Shown: positions 6,033 to 44,645, counted from the stretch's first letter. The stretch is DNA of 64,000 nucleotides from Ministeria vibrans ATCC 50519 (GCA_943704425.1 CALSCP010000692.1:10589-74588); one strand, 5' to 3'. Notes: a model not told the origin generated them from the sequence alone. Numbers and translations: made by a program.

Positions 6033-7280
6033 ATGTCTGAGAAACAACCGCTACTCGGAACTGGGCAACCGCCGAATGGGGGTGGGGGTGCGAGCGGGGC
6101 AGTCGAGCCGTCAGCGCCCCCTGCGCCGGGCGACTCGGCCGAGCTGGCTGTGGCCGAACTGCCGCCCGCGTACGAAGACGTCTACTCGTACCAGCCGCCC
6201 ACGCACGATGTTGTCGTGCCCATCCACTCCACCAGCGGCTACCCACGTAAGGCTCTTTCCCGTCCGTCGACCCCCCTTCCCCTTTTGTCTCCCACACCCG
6301 TCCTCCCCCCCCCCGCCCGCTCCCTCGCGTCGTCCATCCCCCGTCCACGCCGGTGGCTAGTGCAGCGTGGATGTGGCGCGGTCGTCGTGCGCCCTCTGTA
6401 CTGCTGAACGGGGCGCTGGTTGTCGTCCAAATTGGTGATTCCCCAATGAGTGTGTCATCCCGCTCCTCTCCTGCGTAGAGATCACGCCGCCCTTCCAAGA
6501 AGTCGTAACGGGCCCCACATACCAAGCGAATGGAGGCCCGCCAGCGCCGGGGGTGCCTGCGGGCGATGTGCTTGCCGTTGCTTGCGAAGGGTGTCAGAAG
6601 GTCACAGAGTGCTTCTCCCTCTCGCCCCGCTGACAGGCTTGACTTAGGTGGTCACTTACCCTCGTGGACGACGCATTGTACGGTGTAGCTGCCAGTACAT
6701 GACGCCCGTCATGGCACCGCCGCCGTCCAAAAAGTATTTTCGCTGTGCCTGTCGTACTCTCTGCACAGTCTCCGTCAACGCCAGTGCCGTGCGCTGTCCC
6801 CGCTGCCGCGCCACGACCATTATTGGACCGCCTCCACTGGGACAACGGAGAGCACGATGCGGGTAAGAGGGATGGAGAGAGAGAAAGGTGAACTCATATG
6901 TCTTTGCAGTGGATGCAACACGCTTGTGGTGGCACCTGTGCGACGCTCCGCCGCCGTATGCCCTGTCTGCCGCGTCTCAGTCATATTTGATCCATTGCTT
7001 TTTGGTCGACGCATGCGACGTTATACTGTTCTCGGTACGACGTTACGTCTTCGTACTTGAAAAATACTGCAGATGGACTCAGCATACACACACATACGTA
7101 GGATTTGTTTTGGTTGCCATTGGGATTGGAGTGACTCTGGGGGTCTCAGCTGGCACGGACGACACGTTTGGGCCGGTGGAAGTGTTGGGAGCAGTCCCCA
7201 TTGTGCTTGGCGCTATCTTTTTACTCATTGCGCTCGTCATGTTCTCGCGCAAGAAGAGCGAAGCGATTCCAGAAGCATAA
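6033..7280 (+). CDS. TMEM55: TMEM55 / PIP4P-family lysosomal membrane protein
   Basis: N-terminal acidic dileucine EKQPLL, PPAY (PPxY) motif, Cys-rich TPVMAPPPSKKYFRCAC...RCPRC region like TMEM55 TPIKNPPPGKKYVRCPC, and two C-terminal TM helices. Confidence 0.8.
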
Positions 7281-15414: not shown

Positions 15415-18400
15415 ATGAGCGGCAGCGACGACGATGCTCCTGTGGGGCCTGTGGGCGACAGCGACGACGATGCGCCCGTTGGGCCTCCGCCTGCCGACTC
15501 GCCGGTCGCCCATTACGACGACGACGACGACGATGATGACGAGGAGGAGGAGGAGGATGGGGTGAATCCTCTGGCGGCACTCGTAGCGGGACCGCTGGCG
15601 GACGACGACGACGACGACGAGGAAAGCGATGGAGGCGAATACGATCCGACCAAGGGTCGACGCGGTAGGGGTGGTGCCGACGACGACGACGACGATGCCG
15701 ACGACGACATTGACGACCCAGAGGACGACGACGATGGTGATGGTGATGACGACGACGGCGCCAAGGCAGACGACGACCATGATGAGGATGAAGATGATGA
15801 CGACGATGAGGGACCCGTTCGACGAAAGAAGACGCATGCACAAAAGAAGCGCAGTCGTCGTGTGATTGATGATGACGACGACGACGATGATGACGAGGAA
15901 GAAGAGGACGTTGGCGAGGGCGACAAGGACGACAGTTACAACGAGCGCAAGCGACGCCACGAGAGCGACGGGAGCGAACTGGACTCTGATGACCTTGAGT
16001 TGATCAAGGAGGCACAGGAGAAGGCGCTGGTACAGGAAGGACGCTCACGCAAGCGAGCCAAAGACACAGAGAAGAAACAGAAGAAGAAGAATAAGAAGCA
16101 GAAGACGGCCAAGACAGCCAAGCTGAGTGCGTTTGCGCAACAGTTTGTCGAGAGCAGTGCGAGTGTTGACAAGGGCGACGAAGACACGGAGAGTGGTGCG
16201 CCGCCGAAGAAGAAGAAGCGACGCCGCGACGACTTTGTTGCCGACTCGGATGAGGATTTGGAAGAGGACGACGATGATGCACTGGCGCGATTTGAAGCGT
16301 TTGACGAGGAGATGGCTAGCGATGAGGAGGACCTGTCGCCGCCGGGTTCCGACGAGGAGGAGGACGACGAGGAGGAGGGAGGCGACTCGGATGGCGATGG
16401 GGGCACAGCGGCACTCTTGGGTGGGAAGTCGAAGAAGAAGAAGAAGAAGGCGACGGGGGCTGCTGCACCGCCGGCGTCGTTGCGTGTGGATGACGAGTTT
16501 GGTGACTTTATTGAGCACGATGGGTCTGAATCGGAGCACTCCGAGGACGAAGAGATGGACGATGGTGTTCGCTTTGAGGTGGATATTCTGAAAGAGGGCC
16601 AGAATGAGGCACTGGGCATTTTCGGGGAGCTGTATCATGGACTGCTTGACGGCGCGACCGCCTTGGATGCGGATGTGGAGGACGACTTTGATGACGGCGA
16701 CTACGACCGACTCAACGAGGAGGACGAGGAGATTATCGAAGAGGGTGGTGACGACGCTGACGCGGCCACGGCACGGATGGCGGAGCGACAGCGAAGGCGC
16801 GAGGAGCGTCGCAAGGAGCGTGCGATTGGGCTCGAGCAGGCGTACGAGCCGGCCGAGCTGGTGCGCTCGCTGATGACCGCGTCGGACACTCTCATTCGTG
16901 CTACTGATTTTCCCGAGCGACTGCAGTCGCTGCAGAAGCTGCGTCAGACACACACAGAGGCGCATGGTGCGGGCTTTGCTGAAGAAGCCGAGTGGATCTA
17001 TGTCAATGGGTTTGGGGGGCGACCCAAGAGTGACGATGGCAGTCGACGGGCGGCGCGCTCGCTCCACCGCGACGTCCGCTCGTTCATTGTGGACATCCGT
17101 GAAGGATCTGCCTCGGGTGCCGTCAAGGGCATTACCAATGCGCTACGGCTCATTTTCCAGGACGGCTTTGAGCCGGCGTTTGTGGCGACATACCGTGTCG
17201 ACGACCTCCTCGACCTGGCACAGTCGTACCACAGCGAGGTGTTGCCCACCGAAGACATCATGTTGCGACTGTACGTGATGCTTGACTGGGACGAGCGCTT
17301 TCTGCGACTGCACGCTGGCAAGCGACGACTCCTTCAGCTGTGCGACCAGGTGCGCGACTCGCTGCTTGAGGCTGAAGCCTACGATGGCGCTGATCGCGTA
17401 GTGGTCGAAACGACGCGACTGGCACTGCAGGATGACGCAGAGGAGCAGGCACACCTGGCCAACGGCGGCATCGAAGTGGACCACGAGCTGGCCGACATGG
17501 AGCAGCGCATGGTCTTCTACTTTGCCGATCGCATAAACACAGCCAAGAAGGGGACTGGCCAGCACCAAATGCCCGCCCAGCACACCAACTACCGACACTG
17601 TCTCTCGTCGGGCGTCGGTGCCATCACCCGCCACTACGGCATTCCCGTGCACAAGCTCGGGCGCAACATTCTGCTGGGCAAGGCGCGCCACGAGATTGAA
17701 GAGAGTGAGCAGGACCCCAACGATGTTGCCGAGGAGTTTGTCGACCCAACGGTTGAGATGCGCAAGAGCTCTAAACGTGTGCTTGCTATGGCACGGTACA
17801 TGGTTGCGCAAGAGATTGTTTTTGATCCAAACATTCGCGCGGCGGCACGCGATAGTTTCTTCGACCTTGGCTCGGTGACGGTGCGCGCCACGGCCAAGGG
17901 ACTCAAGGAACTCGACTCGCACCACCCTTACTCGGCATTTGCCTTTCTCACCAACAAGCACCTGGACGAGTTTAAGGACGACCAGTTTCTTCACATTTTG
18001 CGTGCTGAAGAGCAAGGTCTTGTCAATGTGTACGTGCGTGGCGAGCGTCTGCTGGCCGGTGAAGATCCTGCCAGTCCTGCTGTCGCGTCGCGCTGTCCCG
18101 AGTTTGTCGAGCGTGCCTTCCGTGTCTACCACGAGACGGAGCTTGACCTGTGGAACCCCGAGCGACGTGCAGCTCTCGAGAACGCTATTGTGTATGGTCT
18201 ATTCCCGCAGTTTGCTCGCGAAGCACGCATGGCACTGCGCAAGCGTGCCGAACTGCACGTGCTGCATCAATGCTTTGTCGACATGCTCAAGCGTGCCATG
18301 AGCCCGCCTGTGCCTCGGACGCTTTTGCCGCTTCGCAGCGATTTTGGTGGTGACGAAGTGGCGTACGACGCGGAGTTGCGCGACTACGAGTCGTCCGTGT

Positions 18401-20810
18401 GCGGCACAGTCGCCGGCTGTTTCATTGGCGACTCGCGCACCCCAACTTTCCTTGCCTTCATCAATGGCAACGGTGTCATGATGGACTTTCTCAAGCTCGA
18501 CTACCTGGCCAAGGGACGTGCGGCGGGCGCTTCGAAGCTCGAGTCGGACGAGCGCCGACTGCGTGAGTTCATTGAGGCGAAGCGGCCATCGGTGGTCGCT
18601 GTTGCCGCCAACAATTTGTCGGACCGTCGCATCTTTGACCAGATTGCCGGCATTGTTGGATCGGTCAACGACCTGAAACGACACGAGGCACGCGAACGCA
18701 AGCAAGAGATGCTCGATGAAAAGCGCGAGGTGGACGCGGCTGCGTTGAAGCGCAAGAAGAGCAAGAAGAAGGCGGGCGCAGTGACTGCCGAGCTGAACCC
18801 GCTTGACTACGAACTGCAGCCCGAAGACAACGCAGGCTTCACGCCCATGCAGGTACGCTGGGCTGACCCCTCGGTCCCCAACATCTACGGTCAGAGTGAG
18901 CGTTCGAGCAAGGAGTTTCCGCAGTTTCCGCCGGTGCTGTGTCGTGCCATTTCGGTTGGGCGTGTCGTGCAGGACCCACTCTTTGAGTACGCGTCGTTGT
19001 CGAACATTGACCACGAGCTGACGGGCGTCAAGGTGACGCCGCTGCAGAGCCTTGTGGGTGAGGAGCTTGTGGAAGAGTGGTTTGAGCGGGCGCTGGTGAC
19101 GGCTGTGGCGCGTGTCGGTGTTGACTTCAACCATGTCCTGCGTTTCCCACATCGCGAGGCAGCGCTTCATCTGGTGGCCGGGTTTGGGTTGCGCAAGGCA
19201 CAGTACCTGGCACGTGGCGTGCAGCAGCGACGTCAGCCTATTCGCACACGACTTGAGTTACGTGCCACACCAGGCGTGGGCGAGTGTGTGTACCGCAACG
19301 CGGCGCCCTTCCTCAAGATTGTGGCTCCAGCACACTCGCACAACGACGACGATGACATGGACGAGTACGAGATGGAGGGTGTCGACGACGGTGACATTGT
19401 GTACGATGACGATGACGATGACGATGCCGACGACGACGACGACGGCGAACGAAGACGCGCTCGACGACGGAATCAGCAGCGACAGCGGCAACGGCAACGT
19501 GGTGGTGACGAAGATGAGGGTGAGGATGATGGTGACGGCGATGAAATTGTCGTGCCTGAGCCACTAGGGTACACGGAAGAGGAGGAGGAGTACTTTGCAG
19601 TGGTGCACAACGACGAGCTAGACCTGAATGACATTGTGGAGAACGAAGAGCTGGTGAAGGACGCGGACGACGACGAGGACAACGTGAACTTTGTTGAGCA
19701 CCAGCAGTTGTTGGTGGAGAAGCGCAAGCGACTGGCCGAGTGGGAGGAGCGCGAGCGGGCGCGCATTGAGCGGGCAGAGGCGATTGAGATGGCGCAGGAG
19801 CGACTGCGGCGGCGACGCGAGCGCAACGAGGAGCTCGAGCGAGCGAAGCGTGAGAAGCGCCTGATTCACTATGTGGACGTGCTCGACCAGACGCGAGTGC
19901 CGCCCGAGGCGTACGATTATGCACGTTTCATTGCGAAGAACGCGGTGGAGTCGAACGAGACGGCGGACGACATTCGGGACGATCCGAGCAAGCATGTGGC
20001 GCGTCTGTTGGCGTCGCGCAGTGACGACTCGGGAGCGCGCGAGATTCTGCGTCTGTTTGACTTGGCGGACATGGCGCTGAACTACCTGCGACAGAAGAAT
20101 GTGGTGCAGCTGCTCGAGTTGATTCGTGAAGAGCTGCGCGATCCGTTTCGTGATCCTCGTCGACGGCTAGAGGATGTTGCGGGTGAATTAGGGGCGCCCG
20201 AGTCGCGCACGGGCAACCCGTATGCGTCGGTGGGAGCCGAGCGGTTGTTGACGCTCTTCACGGGCGAGACGCTGGCGACGTTGTGCAAGGGACGTGTGGT
20301 GAAGGGCACGGTGATGCGGTTTAGTCAGCGTGACAAACCGACAACGACGGTGCGACTCGACTGTGGACTGCAGGGCATCATTCCATTGTCGAAGCTGAGT
20401 CGCACGCGTCTCGCACACCCCGAGGAGCGTCTGTCGATTGGGCAGGTGGTTGAGGCGCGCATTGTCGAGCTGGATCCGGCGCGGATGTTGGCGGTGCTCG
20501 AGTGTCGCGGGGACACCATGGCGAACCCACCACCCGAGATGGCACCCGTGCGCGACGCCATCTACTATGATGCGCCGGCTGAGGAGGCGGCACGAGCGTC
20601 GGCGCGGGCCAAGAAGGAGGCGCAGCACCAAGCCAAGATGCGACGGTACAAGAAGCGACCGATTGAGCACCCTCTCTTCCGCAATGTTTCGCTGGCAGCC
20701 GCACTTGCACTGCTTGAGGACCCTTCGGTTGACGCGGTGTTTCGTCCCAGCAGTAAGGGGACGGACCATCTGACAGTGTCTTGGAAGGTAAAGCAAAAGA
20801 GGGGAAAAAA

Positions 20811-20862
<52 letters not shown>

Positions 20863-30967: not shown

Positions 30968-32326
30968 ATGAACTAAAGTTACCTTGATGTCTTCACGCGA
31001 GCACTGATCGCCCACTCCAGAAAACTTCACAACACAACCCGGCTCAATGGCAACCTCAGGCTCAGTCGCCTCCCCATCATCATCAGCAGCAGCAGCAGTG
31101 TCGTCCGCGGGACCCGCGTCATCGCTCGCGTCCTTTGCCTCAGTACTCTCTGTGCTCTCTGTCGTGCTGGTCGTGGCTGTGGTGGTGCTTGTGGCGCTGG
31201 CGGGTTCTTTGACTGCCGACGCAGCTTTCGTCTCCTTCTTCTTTTTCCGCTCCTCTCGCTCGTCCTTCTTTGCCGTTACATATGCCTCCTTCATCATTGT
31301 AAGCAACGTACGTTCGCCGCACTTGAGTGGCTCTGTCGCAAGCTTCTCCGCTGCCTCGACCGTGTCCACCTCGACAAAGATGGAGCCCTTGAAGTCTTTG
31401 GTGTCAAAGCGACGTCGCATGCGGATCGCCTTGACCTTCGCCAGAGGTGCGAAAAACTCTTGAAGTGTGTCCAGGGTCGAGTCAGTCGGAAATCCCTTCT
31501 ACAGAAAGGGTAAAACTTGGTATGAGCGACAAACCCACACACCACACACTCATTATCACACACACACACAAGACTCACACTCACTCACACTCACTCACTC
31601 GCGTAAACCTCCCTTGCGCCTGTCACACAACTTACCACATAGACCGTGCGCTTGTCAAAATCGGCATCCTCAACCTGCGCGTTGGTGCGCCGCACCGCCG
31701 TATCTGTATCGTTCACCTAAAGAACCACAGCGACTGAGTGTGACTCTGTGACACTCAAAGTTCGCATCGCTCTCACCTCAATCAGTCCCGAAGTACTCGT
31801 CTTCAGCGCTGCCACGATCACAGCAGCATCATCCGACAGCTGCTTCAGACGGTTGAAACGCAGCAGAATATCGATGCCAACCCCTACAGCGATGTTTTTT
31901 CGTGTTATTGCTCATTTCACTTGCACGACAAATCGTCGACCCAGTACGCTCCACGACGCCCAACGCATCCCTTCACCACCCCCACCACCCCGAACCATCC
32001 CATATGCTCGTGTGCAGGCGAACTGGACCCGCTGTCTCGGCAAGGGGCCGACGAGATGCGTTGAAACAGCGACGACACGTGTGACGACGAAACGGGACGA
32101 GAACAATAATAAAACCCCTCCTCAGCTTACATCCGTCGGCATTCTCGGCAATGCGCTCTTTCATGTACTTGTCCTTGCGCAAGTTGGAGTCACCAAAGTA
32201 GTACTACAGCAAAAGACCACAAAAGTAAAGTTCAGCTCAAAGGCCAAACCGACTCTCGGCAACCCAACACCAATAGCATACCTCCACTTGCTGAACAATC
32301 TTCTTTGTCGTTGCTTCGTCAGCCAT
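30459..32326 (-). CDS. SSB: La autoantigen (La motif, RRM1, RRM2, RGG-rich tail)
   Basis: IVQQV|EYYFGDSNLRKDKYM, LLRFNRLK, RTVYV|KGFP, FKGSIFVE, SREDIK|EIFGRFGTIGWIDFNRG, RGG repeats and an RKRK NLS. Confidence 0.93.
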
Positions 32327-32373
32327 GTTGATGTTGAATAAAATATTCTGAAATTATTAATGATGATTGAAAT

Positions 32374-33909
32374 ATGAAAAATATTTTTACTCGATATCAT
32401 ATGAAGAGAGCCCGTTCGCCCGAGCTCACATCTGCGGTCCATAATGGCAATGACAAAATAAATGACGACGACGATCGGTTTCACGCGCCATACACACAAT
32501 TGGTGAATCGGTATTTTGACTGCGCTGAATTTGATGGAGACGGATTTGTCTCGCTGAAGGACCTCGAAGCGGCCGGCGACAACGCCCTTGTGCGCATTGT
32601 TGCTCTCTTGGTACACGTTGAGCCTCCGCGAGAAATATCGGGCGCCGCTGGCTGTATGACTGTGTGGCGTCTGGTCGACTCTTCGCGTCTTGAACCCGTT
32701 CGATTGGCGCTTTTTGGCGCTGTCTGGTCGGGTGCGGCTCGTCCCGGGCAGATTGTCACGTTGAGCAGTGCACGAGTCAACATGTTTCAAGGGAGCACAA
32801 GTTTGAAGGTGGGCGAGCGCGCGGGGCTGCAGCTGGCTGACTGCACGCTTGCGCACTCGCGCGCACAGAGCCTGCTGCGTTGGGCCCAGACGACACACGC
32901 CCACTTGTTTGACGAAAAGCACATTCAGTGGGCGGATTTGTGTCAGAAGAGCGTGGACGTGAGATTGGCGGAAGCCCAGCCGGGTCAGCTTGTGAATTGC
33001 TTGGTGCTTGTGAGCGGTGTGCTCAAAGACACGCCCAACATTAATATGCGGCTCGCTGCGCCTGGCGCCGAAAAGATCACGCGCGTCCGCTTGCTTGTGA
33101 GTGATCCATTGCACGGTGTGCCTCATCCCATTCCGTTGGTTCTATGGGGTCGTGCCCGCGACTGGCACGCCCATTTTTCCAAGGTACTCGTCGCGACAAA
33201 CAGCAGCAAAACTGTGTACTATCGATTCGTGGCGGTTCTTGTGGAAGGCGACAGCTCACAGGCTGGCGCACGTGCCCTTAGACTACACACACTCCCAACG
33301 AGTTCGTTTTGTTCCGCCAAGCCAGAAGACGTGTGCACCAGCGAGGCGCTCACGAGCGACCCTGAGCCGCTCACTTCGTTCGCCTCGCTTCACGATGACA
33401 CCGTATTCAGTGGCCAAGTGACTGTGCTCGCCAAGATTTACCGTGTTGATCGTGCCGTGTCACGTGCGAGTTTATGGCGCGAATCTTGTAGCGACATTTA
33501 CATGGGTTGTGTCGAGTGCGCGCGTCCCCTCGAGCGCGATCCCAACCGCATTGTGAAGCCCTGTCGCCACTGTGTCTCTGCCACCCTCACCGAGAGCACT
33601 TCCTTCTTTTCGCCACTCCTTCTGACACTCAACAGCACCCATGAGTCCCCCGAAAAGATCCAAGTGCGCGTTGAACCTGAATCAGTGGCTTTGGTGCTCT
33701 CACTCGAGCGAGTCACCGCTTCCCAACTGCGCTACAATCCTTCGTTACACAACACTCGCGCAACCCGACACAATCGCACAACTCTGCCGGTTCCCGACCA
33801 TTTGTTTACCACTGTTGCACTCTTCACACTTGACTGCGTGACCATTCAAGATGACAATGGCGCGATCAAAGCGCGCTCCATTGAATGCATTCACAAGCGA
33901 ACACTCTAA
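32374..33909 (+). CDS. SHLD2: Shieldin complex subunit 2 (FAM35A)-like triple OB-fold ssDNA-binding protein; intronless (alternative start 32401)
   Basis: LLRWAQTTHAHL, LAEAQPGQLVNCLVLV, LVLWGRARDW, LRLHTLPTSS, SGQVTVLAKI and YMGCVECARPLERDPNRIVKPCRHC align in order with recalled SHLD2 LLAYVSSKHSYL, LEHLQPDVLVHAVLRV, LVLWGPGAAW, LELHTTPWSS, SGVVLIKAQI and [25 protein letters not shown]. Confidence 0.8.
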   Translation: MKNIFTRYHMKRARSPELTSAVHNGNDKINDDDDRFHAPYTQLVNRYFDCAEFDGDGFVSLKDLEAAGDNALVRIVALLVHVEPPREISGAAGCMTVWRLVDSSRLEPVRLALFGAVWSGAARPGQIVTLSSARVNMFQGSTSLKVGERAGLQLADCTLAHSRAQSLLRWAQTTHAHLFDEKHIQWADLCQKSVDVRLAEAQPGQLVNCLVLVSGVLKDTPNINMRLAAPGAEKITRVRLLVSDPLHGVPHPIPLVLWGRARDWHAHFSKVLVATNSSKTVYYRFVAVLVEGDSSQAGARALRLHTLPTSSFCSAKPEDVCTSEALTSDPEPLTSFASLHDDTVFSGQVTVLAKIYRVDRAVSRASLWRESCSDIYMGCVECARPLERDPNRIVKPCRHCVSATLTESTSFFSPLLLTLNSTHESPEKIQVRVEPESVALVLSLERVTASQLRYNPSLHNTRATRHNRTTLPVPDHLFTTVALFTLDCVTIQDDNGAIKARSIECIHKRTL

Positions 33910-34006
33910 CGCACCAAATGATATGACTGTACACTGTATATTAATAATTTGTATTCGTATGATTTTAAATGTATATGAAATGACGTGTGCGTTTGCGTTG
34001 ATCATC

Positions 34007-44135: not shown

Positions 44136-44645
44136 TTAAAGAGGAGTGAGCACGTAGAAGCCCACGTCGTGTGGCACAATGGGCACCAGGAAGGAGTCTG
44201 TGGCATTGTACAGGTCTGTGTGGGCCCACACGTCGCGCACTCTGTACGTGGTGTGCGCAGGCAGACCCAGCATGGCCCATGTGATGAGCACCGTCTGCAG
44301 TGTCTGCGTGTCCGTGTTGATGGCAGCCACTGCATGACGGTTCTTGGACAAGGGACCAGCCCACACCTATAGACGGAAGGAGAGGGTTATGCCGTGGGTG
44401 TGTGTGTGTGTGTAATTGTCAGGGTGTGTGGCGTACCTCCCATGATTGCGATGGAGGGGATGTGCCAACCAGAGTGCCTAAAAAAGTGAAAAGGTCGTTA
44501 GTCTGCGCGCGTGCGCATTATCACTTTGTTTCTTTTCTCCCTCCTTTCTCCTTGTCACTTTGTTTCTCTCCCTCTTCTCTGTCTATCTGTCTCTTCTTTA
44601 AGTACCTTGAACACCCAGATTGTCTTGATTCACCGCAATTGCTGC

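Follow-up and report, generated by a model that had tools for sequence, protein, structure and literature searches.

Does a single-celled protist encode a relative of SHLD2, the subunit that forms the single-stranded DNA (ssDNA)-binding core of shieldin? This question is raised by an open reading frame (ORF) at 32374..33909 on the plus strand of a 64,000-nucleotide stretch of DNA from Ministeria vibrans ATCC 50519 (GCA_943704425.1 CALSCP010000692.1:10589-74588), referred to here as the window. An initial annotation of the window had proposed that this ORF encodes a compact SHLD2-like protein built of tandem oligonucleotide/oligosaccharide-binding (OB) domains. SHLD2 has been reported in vertebrates only (PMC6003645), and according to PMC11616998, which cites Setiaputra and Durocher 2019, shieldin orthologues are lacking in yeast, fly, worm, zebrafish and frog. 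The primary literature treats shieldin as a vertebrate invention, and a literature search found no report of a non-vertebrate SHLD2. We propose that the ORF most likely encodes a highly divergent relative of the SHLD2 OB module without the N-terminus that recruits REV7 and SHLD3, a reading to which we assign a probability of roughly 0.5.

The evidence that carries this reading is a profile match. When the ORF was compared with all of Pfam, the sole significant family was SHLD2_C (PF15793), which scored 37.9 bits (E 1.6e-9) against a curated cut-off of 27, and the C-terminal piece alone reached 40.3 bits. The matched stretch comprises aa 357-441 (33442..33696, plus strand) and profile positions 20-99 of 166. 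We also performed a six-frame scan of the genome, which is a 29.7-Mb draft in 2860 contigs; spliced genes were searched exon by exon, and each negative result in this genome means that the gene was not detected. The ORF was the sole match to PF15793 at E<=1 (39.7 bits). Thus, at the level of profiles, the SHLD2-like label of the initial annotation is borne out in part. Automated annotation would already label the ORF as SHLD2_C domain-containing, because it exceeds the Pfam gathering score, so that no novelty attaches to the domain call. Judged by sequence, the closest known family is SHLD2, via the putative third OB domain (OB-C) and its zinc ribbon.

The zinc ribbon, YMGCVEC-x14-CRHC with Cys379, 382, 397 and 400 (33499..33579, plus strand), corresponds to SHLD2_C positions 38-67. 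A 37-aa piece carrying the ribbon (aa 372-408) scored 27.6 bits alone and aligned ungapped to these positions, and the spacing of the ribbon therefore equals that of the SHLD2_C family. Split pieces comprising aa 341-396 and aa 379-511 scored 18.6 and 28.3 bits, respectively. As controls for the ribbon, we used that of the genome's own RPA1 and two other CxxC-x14-CxxC stretches of the window, at 6905-6970 (plus strand) and 44174-44239 (minus strand), the latter two cut to the same 37-aa format. The RPA1 ribbon is of the form Cx4C-x13-CxxC; it scored 94.7 bits on Rep_fac-A_C, with weak generic zinc-finger matches, and had no SHLD2_C match at E<=10. Neither control stretch matched SHLD2_C, and both returned generic zinc fingers only (weak RING/zinc-ribbon-like and DUF7564-like matches). 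The ORF ribbon, on the other hand, matched no generic zinc-finger family. Taken together, the negative controls indicate that cysteine spacing alone does not explain the SHLD2_C match. By these comparisons the SHLD2_C similarity is real but narrow, and the case rests mainly on ~80 residues.

The initial annotation had quoted three motif blocks and placed them in the order of the SHLD2 OB-A/B/C region. The ORF contains each of them: LVLWGRARDW (aa 255-264), LRLHTLPTSS (aa 302-311) and YMGCVECARPLERDPNRIVKPCRHC (aa 376-400), which includes the ribbon pattern, although the third has three residues rather than one between its first CxxC and the following leucine. The proposed correspondence with SHLD2 stands for this third block, which is tied to the family by Pfam SHLD2_C. 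The first two blocks could not be linked to SHLD2 in this way; the SHLD2_OB1 and OB_SHLD2_2nd models are unmatched.

A putative OB-A of the RPA/SSB type (aa ~59-160; 32548..32853, plus strand) is suggested by two similarities. Residues 61-145 matched REPA_OB_2 (PF16900) at 17.1-17.8 bits (E 0.003-0.005), under the cut-off of 27, and a PDB sequence search weakly aligned Sulfolobus SSB chains over aa 74-152, at an E of ~0.05. The PDB alignment pairs F114 and F138 of the ORF with SSB W56 (LTLWG) and F79 (TTAF), so that two aromatic positions are retained; these two SSB residues stack on ssDNA. The putative OB-B (aa ~196-312; 32959..33309, plus strand) contains both the LVLWGRARDW and LRLHTLPTSS blocks and is proposed from its position, its length and its L-V-L-W-G-type strand. 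This region, with a predicted isoelectric point of ~10, had no Pfam match and no PDB sequence match, and it aligns in register, non-significantly, with an OB domain of the genome's own RPA1. We infer that domains A and B are OB folds. Lastly, the SHLD2_C match marks a putative OB-C with an inserted zinc ribbon (aa ~341-511; 33394..33906, plus strand), for which the PDB sequence search found no relative.

Similar to SHLD2 (FAM35A/RINN2), the protein has three putative tandem OB-type domains, and its structured part of ~450 aa compares with ~480 aa for the OB region of human SHLD2 (PMC6003645). Both have a four-Cys CxxC...CxxC ribbon in the third OB domain, at a spacing in the ORF identical to that of the Pfam profile. 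The OB region of human SHLD2 binds ssDNA; its OB-C binds SHLD1 and is predicted to bind CTC1 as well (PMC10398656). Unlike SHLD2, the ORF has neither the ~420-aa disordered N-terminus nor the REV7-binding segment, and it leaves the C-terminal 40% of the SHLD2_C profile without a match; in SHLD2, SHLD1 is bound by the OB-C fold (PMC10398656). The host also differs, as it is a marine protist and not a vertebrate, and SHLD1 and REV7 were not detected in its draft genome (SHLD3 was not searched).

A number of results weigh against a SHLD2 relationship. Thirty ribbon residues account for approximately 70% of the SHLD2_C score, the flanking parts give no score by themselves, and profile positions 100-166 are unmatched. 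SHLD2_OB1 (PF21669) matched neither the ORF at E<=10 nor anything in the genome; OB_SHLD2_2nd (PF22779) likewise did not match the ORF at E<=10, and its single genomic match lies elsewhere (E 0.5). With phmmer, no full-length relative emerged among 1.84 billion representatives, which left no homologue from which to judge conservation, phylogeny or fold. AlphaFold2, run without an alignment, gave a mean predicted local distance difference test score of 34.5 for the full-length protein and 30.3 for the C-terminal part, and the models were unusable. Additionally, the RNA depth over the ORF is only 2-3x the unspliced background (6-10, versus 3.5 for an unspliced contig across an intron of the neighbouring gene, in RNA run X6), and expression is likely but low. 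With SHLD2 vertebrate-only in the literature (PMC6003645), many losses would also be required.

Language-model neighbours and the expected partners of SHLD2 add to these points. In the ESM Atlas, the neighbours of the full protein were all multi-OB ssDNA binders with near-equal scores (0.92-0.94). A POT1 cluster was at the top (0.94), and the others included an unnamed plant cluster, MEIOB, CDC24-OB, CTC1, SPIDR and SHLD2 (rank 22); POT1, MEIOB, CDC24-OB and CTC1 all rank over SHLD2. For aa 330-511, the first Pfam-bearing neighbours were RPA1 DBD-C (Rep_fac-A_C) clusters at 0.91, followed by POT1, a mixed CTC1/SHLD2 cluster, SPIDR and MEIOB. Thus, the language-model neighbours confirm the multi-OB ssDNA-binder class and do not single out SHLD2. 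As for the partners named in the initial annotation, three did not turn up in the draft genome: REV7, as the only HORMA genes found were MAD2 and a HORMAD1-like gene (C2082); SHLD1, as SHLD1_C (PF15021) was unmatched; and 53BP1, for which there was no clear 53BP1-type protein. RIF1 is present (C1367:6658-7497, 94.6 bits). Weighing the significant profile match with the points above, we regard specific shared ancestry with SHLD2 as evenly poised. Because SHLD2_C is matched while OB1, OB2 and the N-terminal region of SHLD2 are not, and the partners are undetected, we did not file the protein as SHLD2. It is filed instead as an orphan RPA70-like multi-OB ssDNA-binding-type protein with a SHLD2-type third domain.

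Several other candidates arose from these searches and were rejected. The phmmer search gave two matches only, a 93-aa fragment at 99% identity and one fish protein, the latter being spurious (a 41-aa repeat in an intermediate-filament protein). A word-index search with the whole protein and with aa 335-460 found nothing, a scan of metagenome contigs found no relative, and a look-up of the exact protein found no entry. Runs X17-X19, which hold small shares of the words, carry short pieces that differ by no more than a single letter; these come from the same organism rather than from relatives and give no comparative data. Of two weak Tudor candidates for 53BP1, one is a VWA/DUF4537 protein and the other a Tudor plus PHD protein. 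The latter, an 873-aa ORF on C386 (L016:3050-5668, minus strand) that the 53BP1 Tudor model picked up weakly, has a PHD finger downstream of a Crb2/JMJD2A-type Tudor domain; no BRCT family was found in it by a Pfam scan, and it is thus not a canonical 53BP1.

The alternative that survives best is that the ORF encodes a lineage-specific RPA70-like paralogue without special SHLD2 kinship, in which the SHLD2_C match would reflect a similar ribbon on the common DBD-C scaffold. That the SHLD2_C score is mostly ribbon, with the SHLD2 OB1 and OB2 models unmatched, would be consistent with such a protein. In its concrete form, which is a live rival, the paralogue would be a telomeric G-strand binder in POT1's stead, similar to Teb1 or to a three-OB POT1, that caps TTAGGG overhangs together with the CST complex. 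TTAGGG telomere arrays are indeed found at contig ends (for example C235:3-104, C1076:2-97 and C1142:1-24), with 391 exact 24-mer matches compared to none for a control pattern, and POT1 (PF02765) had no match in the draft genome. The genome also holds a CTC1-like 863-aa ORF on C1704 (L018:1398-3986, minus strand; 29.9 bits on the CTC1 model) and a TEN1-like gene (C783:6851-7181; 27.5 bits); STN1 was not detected in it by PF10451 or PF09170. The ORF resembles POT1/Teb1-type telomere end-binders in size and multi-OB layout. POT1 was the top language-model neighbour, and POT1-related clusters also appeared for the C-terminal part. Human POT1 OB3 likewise has a four-Cys zinc site.

However, the ORF differs from POT1 in that it matched neither POT1 (PF02765) nor POT1PC (PF16686), nor Rep_fac-A_C, even at E<=10. 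The language-model scores are flat (0.92-0.94) over six families, so that POT1 is not singled out, and an assembly in draft form, with 2860 contigs, could simply have left POT1 undetected. The SHLD2_C match is significant and was not reproduced by equally spaced ribbons. A paralogue without special SHLD2 kinship is the main rival, although we hold it to be rather unlikely.

A second alternative is an orthologue of a known three-OB protein other than SHLD2 (RPA1, MEIOB, CTC1, SPIDR or RADX) that has diverged past recognition. Generic multi-OB language-model neighbours and the weak REPA_OB_2 match in OB-A would fit such an origin. In contrast, RPA1, MEIOB-like and CTC1-like proteins are each encoded elsewhere in the genome. 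The canonical RPA1 is on contig C31 (REPA_OB_2 115.9 bits; two exons match Rep_fac-A_C, at 92.1 and 44.9 bits), to which the genomic Rep_fac-A_C matches are confined, a MEIOB-like gene is at C141:41542-41826 (OB_MEIOB_N 40.5 bits), and the CTC1-like ORF is that on C1704 (29.9 bits). None of these three proteins has detectable similarity to the ORF. The ORF also did not match Rep_fac-A_C (PF08646), OB_MEIOB_N (PF24903), CTC1 (PF15489) or DUF4503 (SPIDR) even at E<=10, and DUF4503 was unmatched in the draft genome. Thus, the prospect raised with the initial annotation, that an RPA70, MEIOB or CTC1 profile might fit the protein better than SHLD2, did not materialize, and POT1 fared no better.

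Similar to DBD-A, -B and -C of RPA70 (RPA1), the ORF has tandem OB domains with a ribbon in the last, and its OB-A carries weak REPA_OB_2 and archaeal SSB similarity. Unlike RPA70, it lacks a Rep_fac-A_C match and an N-terminal protein-interaction OB, and its ribbon spacing is not the Cx4C-x13-CxxC of the host RPA1. It shares with MEIOB and CTC1 the class of RPA70-like multi-OB ssDNA binders, and both are among its language-model neighbours; each is represented in the host by a gene of its own (C141 and C1704). With a separate gene for each, we rejected RPA1, MEIOB and CTC1 as the identity of the ORF, and a diverged orthologue of any known non-SHLD2 three-OB protein is improbable. Since the genome carries canonical RPA1, MEIOB-like and CTC1-like genes elsewhere, the ORF adds a separate, fourth RPA70-like three-OB lineage to these three.

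If the ORF encodes a divergent relative of the SHLD2 OB module, as we favor, it would be a stand-alone RPA70-type protein with a short N-terminal tail, three tandem OB folds and a four-cysteine zinc ribbon in the third. From its domain class the protein is probably an ssDNA binder. OB-A and OB-B may grip ssDNA via aromatic and basic residues (F114, F138 and the W258/W264 block), the zinc ribbon would stiffen OB-C, and OB-C could provide a docking surface for a partner protein. Because the N-terminal region that provides REV7-mediated recruitment in vertebrate SHLD2 is not present here, the protein would act directly on 3' overhangs or ssDNA gaps without REV7. Candidate collaborators are RIF1 or CST, the latter because the genome has CTC1-like and TEN1-like genes.

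A protist protein over the SHLD2_C threshold, in a genome with RIF1, CTC1-like and TEN1-like genes, is a concrete candidate for an OB module older than the shieldin complex. True orthology between the ORF and the SHLD2 OB module, with a shieldin-like role in end protection in a non-animal protist, is doubtful. If it held, the ssDNA-binding core of shieldin would be ancient and would at first have functioned independently of REV7, SHLD1 and SHLD3, perhaps alongside RIF1 and CST, and the REV7-recruiting N-terminus would have been gained later, in the lineage towards vertebrates. This leads to the hypothesis that the DNA-binding core of shieldin is older than animals. If the protein instead took the place of POT1, telomeres with TTAGGG repeats would here have an end-binder of a new type. 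On either reading, a single small genome contains a fourth RPA70-like lineage in addition to RPA1, MEIOB and CTC1.

The gene itself is a single uninterrupted reading frame, 32374-33909 on the plus strand, of 511 aa plus a stop, which is too long for chance expectation, and it occurs as one copy in the 29.7-Mb assembly searched. In RNA run X6, two unspliced and identical contigs (32410-33204 and 33178-33944) span the ORF. The neighbouring minus-strand gene is spliced in the same run, with GT..AG introns at 31499-31635, 31713-31772, 31883-32129 and 32204-32281, which demonstrates that the run holds RNA-derived sequence. Since the contigs over the ORF are unspliced while the neighbour is spliced, the ORF is intronless, in agreement with the intronless 511-aa ORF of the initial annotation. 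Also upheld is the claim that the long disordered N-terminal part of SHLD2 is missing. The tail before the first putative OB domain is at most 58 aa, no splice joint in the X6 contigs enters the ORF, and only 47 nucleotides separate its first ATG from that of the divergent neighbour at 32326 (minus strand). An upstream exon therefore has no room, and the protein is truly compact.

The 47 nucleotides between the divergent start codons (32327..32373) form an AT-rich spacer. The first nine codons of the ORF (27 nucleotides) are 18% G+C, compared to ~50% for the next 100 nucleotides. Because these codons are AT-rich and lie within the AT-rich spacer, the real start is probably Met10 (32401..32403, plus strand). 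The spliced transcript of the neighbour reaches ~32362 in run X6. With the two ATGs 47 nucleotides apart, the two 5' ends must almost touch or overlap. On the opposite strand, a 321-aa ORF at 32161-33126 (minus strand) overlaps the 5' half of the gene and is taken to be a chance frame opposite coding DNA.

Runs from two studies that carry the organism's label, and a second label besides, hold the stretch at 96-100% of its words, and it is also found in algal-culture and seawater metagenomes. No light-harvesting-complex genes were found in the genome. Within the window, a single 1815-aa ORF at 15415-20862 (plus strand) encodes SPT6, which is 21-27% identical to its best matches (cnidarian, insect, mollusc and fungi). 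Identity this low points to an isolated, poorly sampled lineage, and the host is a marine, apparently heterotrophic protist of such a lineage. The concern attached to the initial annotation, that the contig might be animal contamination, is countered by the organism-labelled runs, the divergent SPT6, the short GT..AG introns and the 29.7-Mb assembly, and we rejected it. A Helitron-type RPA-like gene was likewise rejected, as the genome has the ORF in one copy and none of the window ORFs scanned was seen to be a transposon gene. That the ORF is not a genuine host gene at all, but a chance frame, a pseudogene, a Helitron-borne gene or a contaminant, is very improbable: the low RNA-run depth, the lack of database homologues and the overlapping antisense ORF would suit it, but the ORF is a single-copy open frame of 511 codons with a significant domain match, on a gene-dense contig of >74 kb whose organism-labelled runs, neighbour with short introns and SPT6 at <=27% identity to the listed animal proteins all argue against it. 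The MEIOB-like and HORMAD1-like genes are parts of a meiotic toolkit in this protist.

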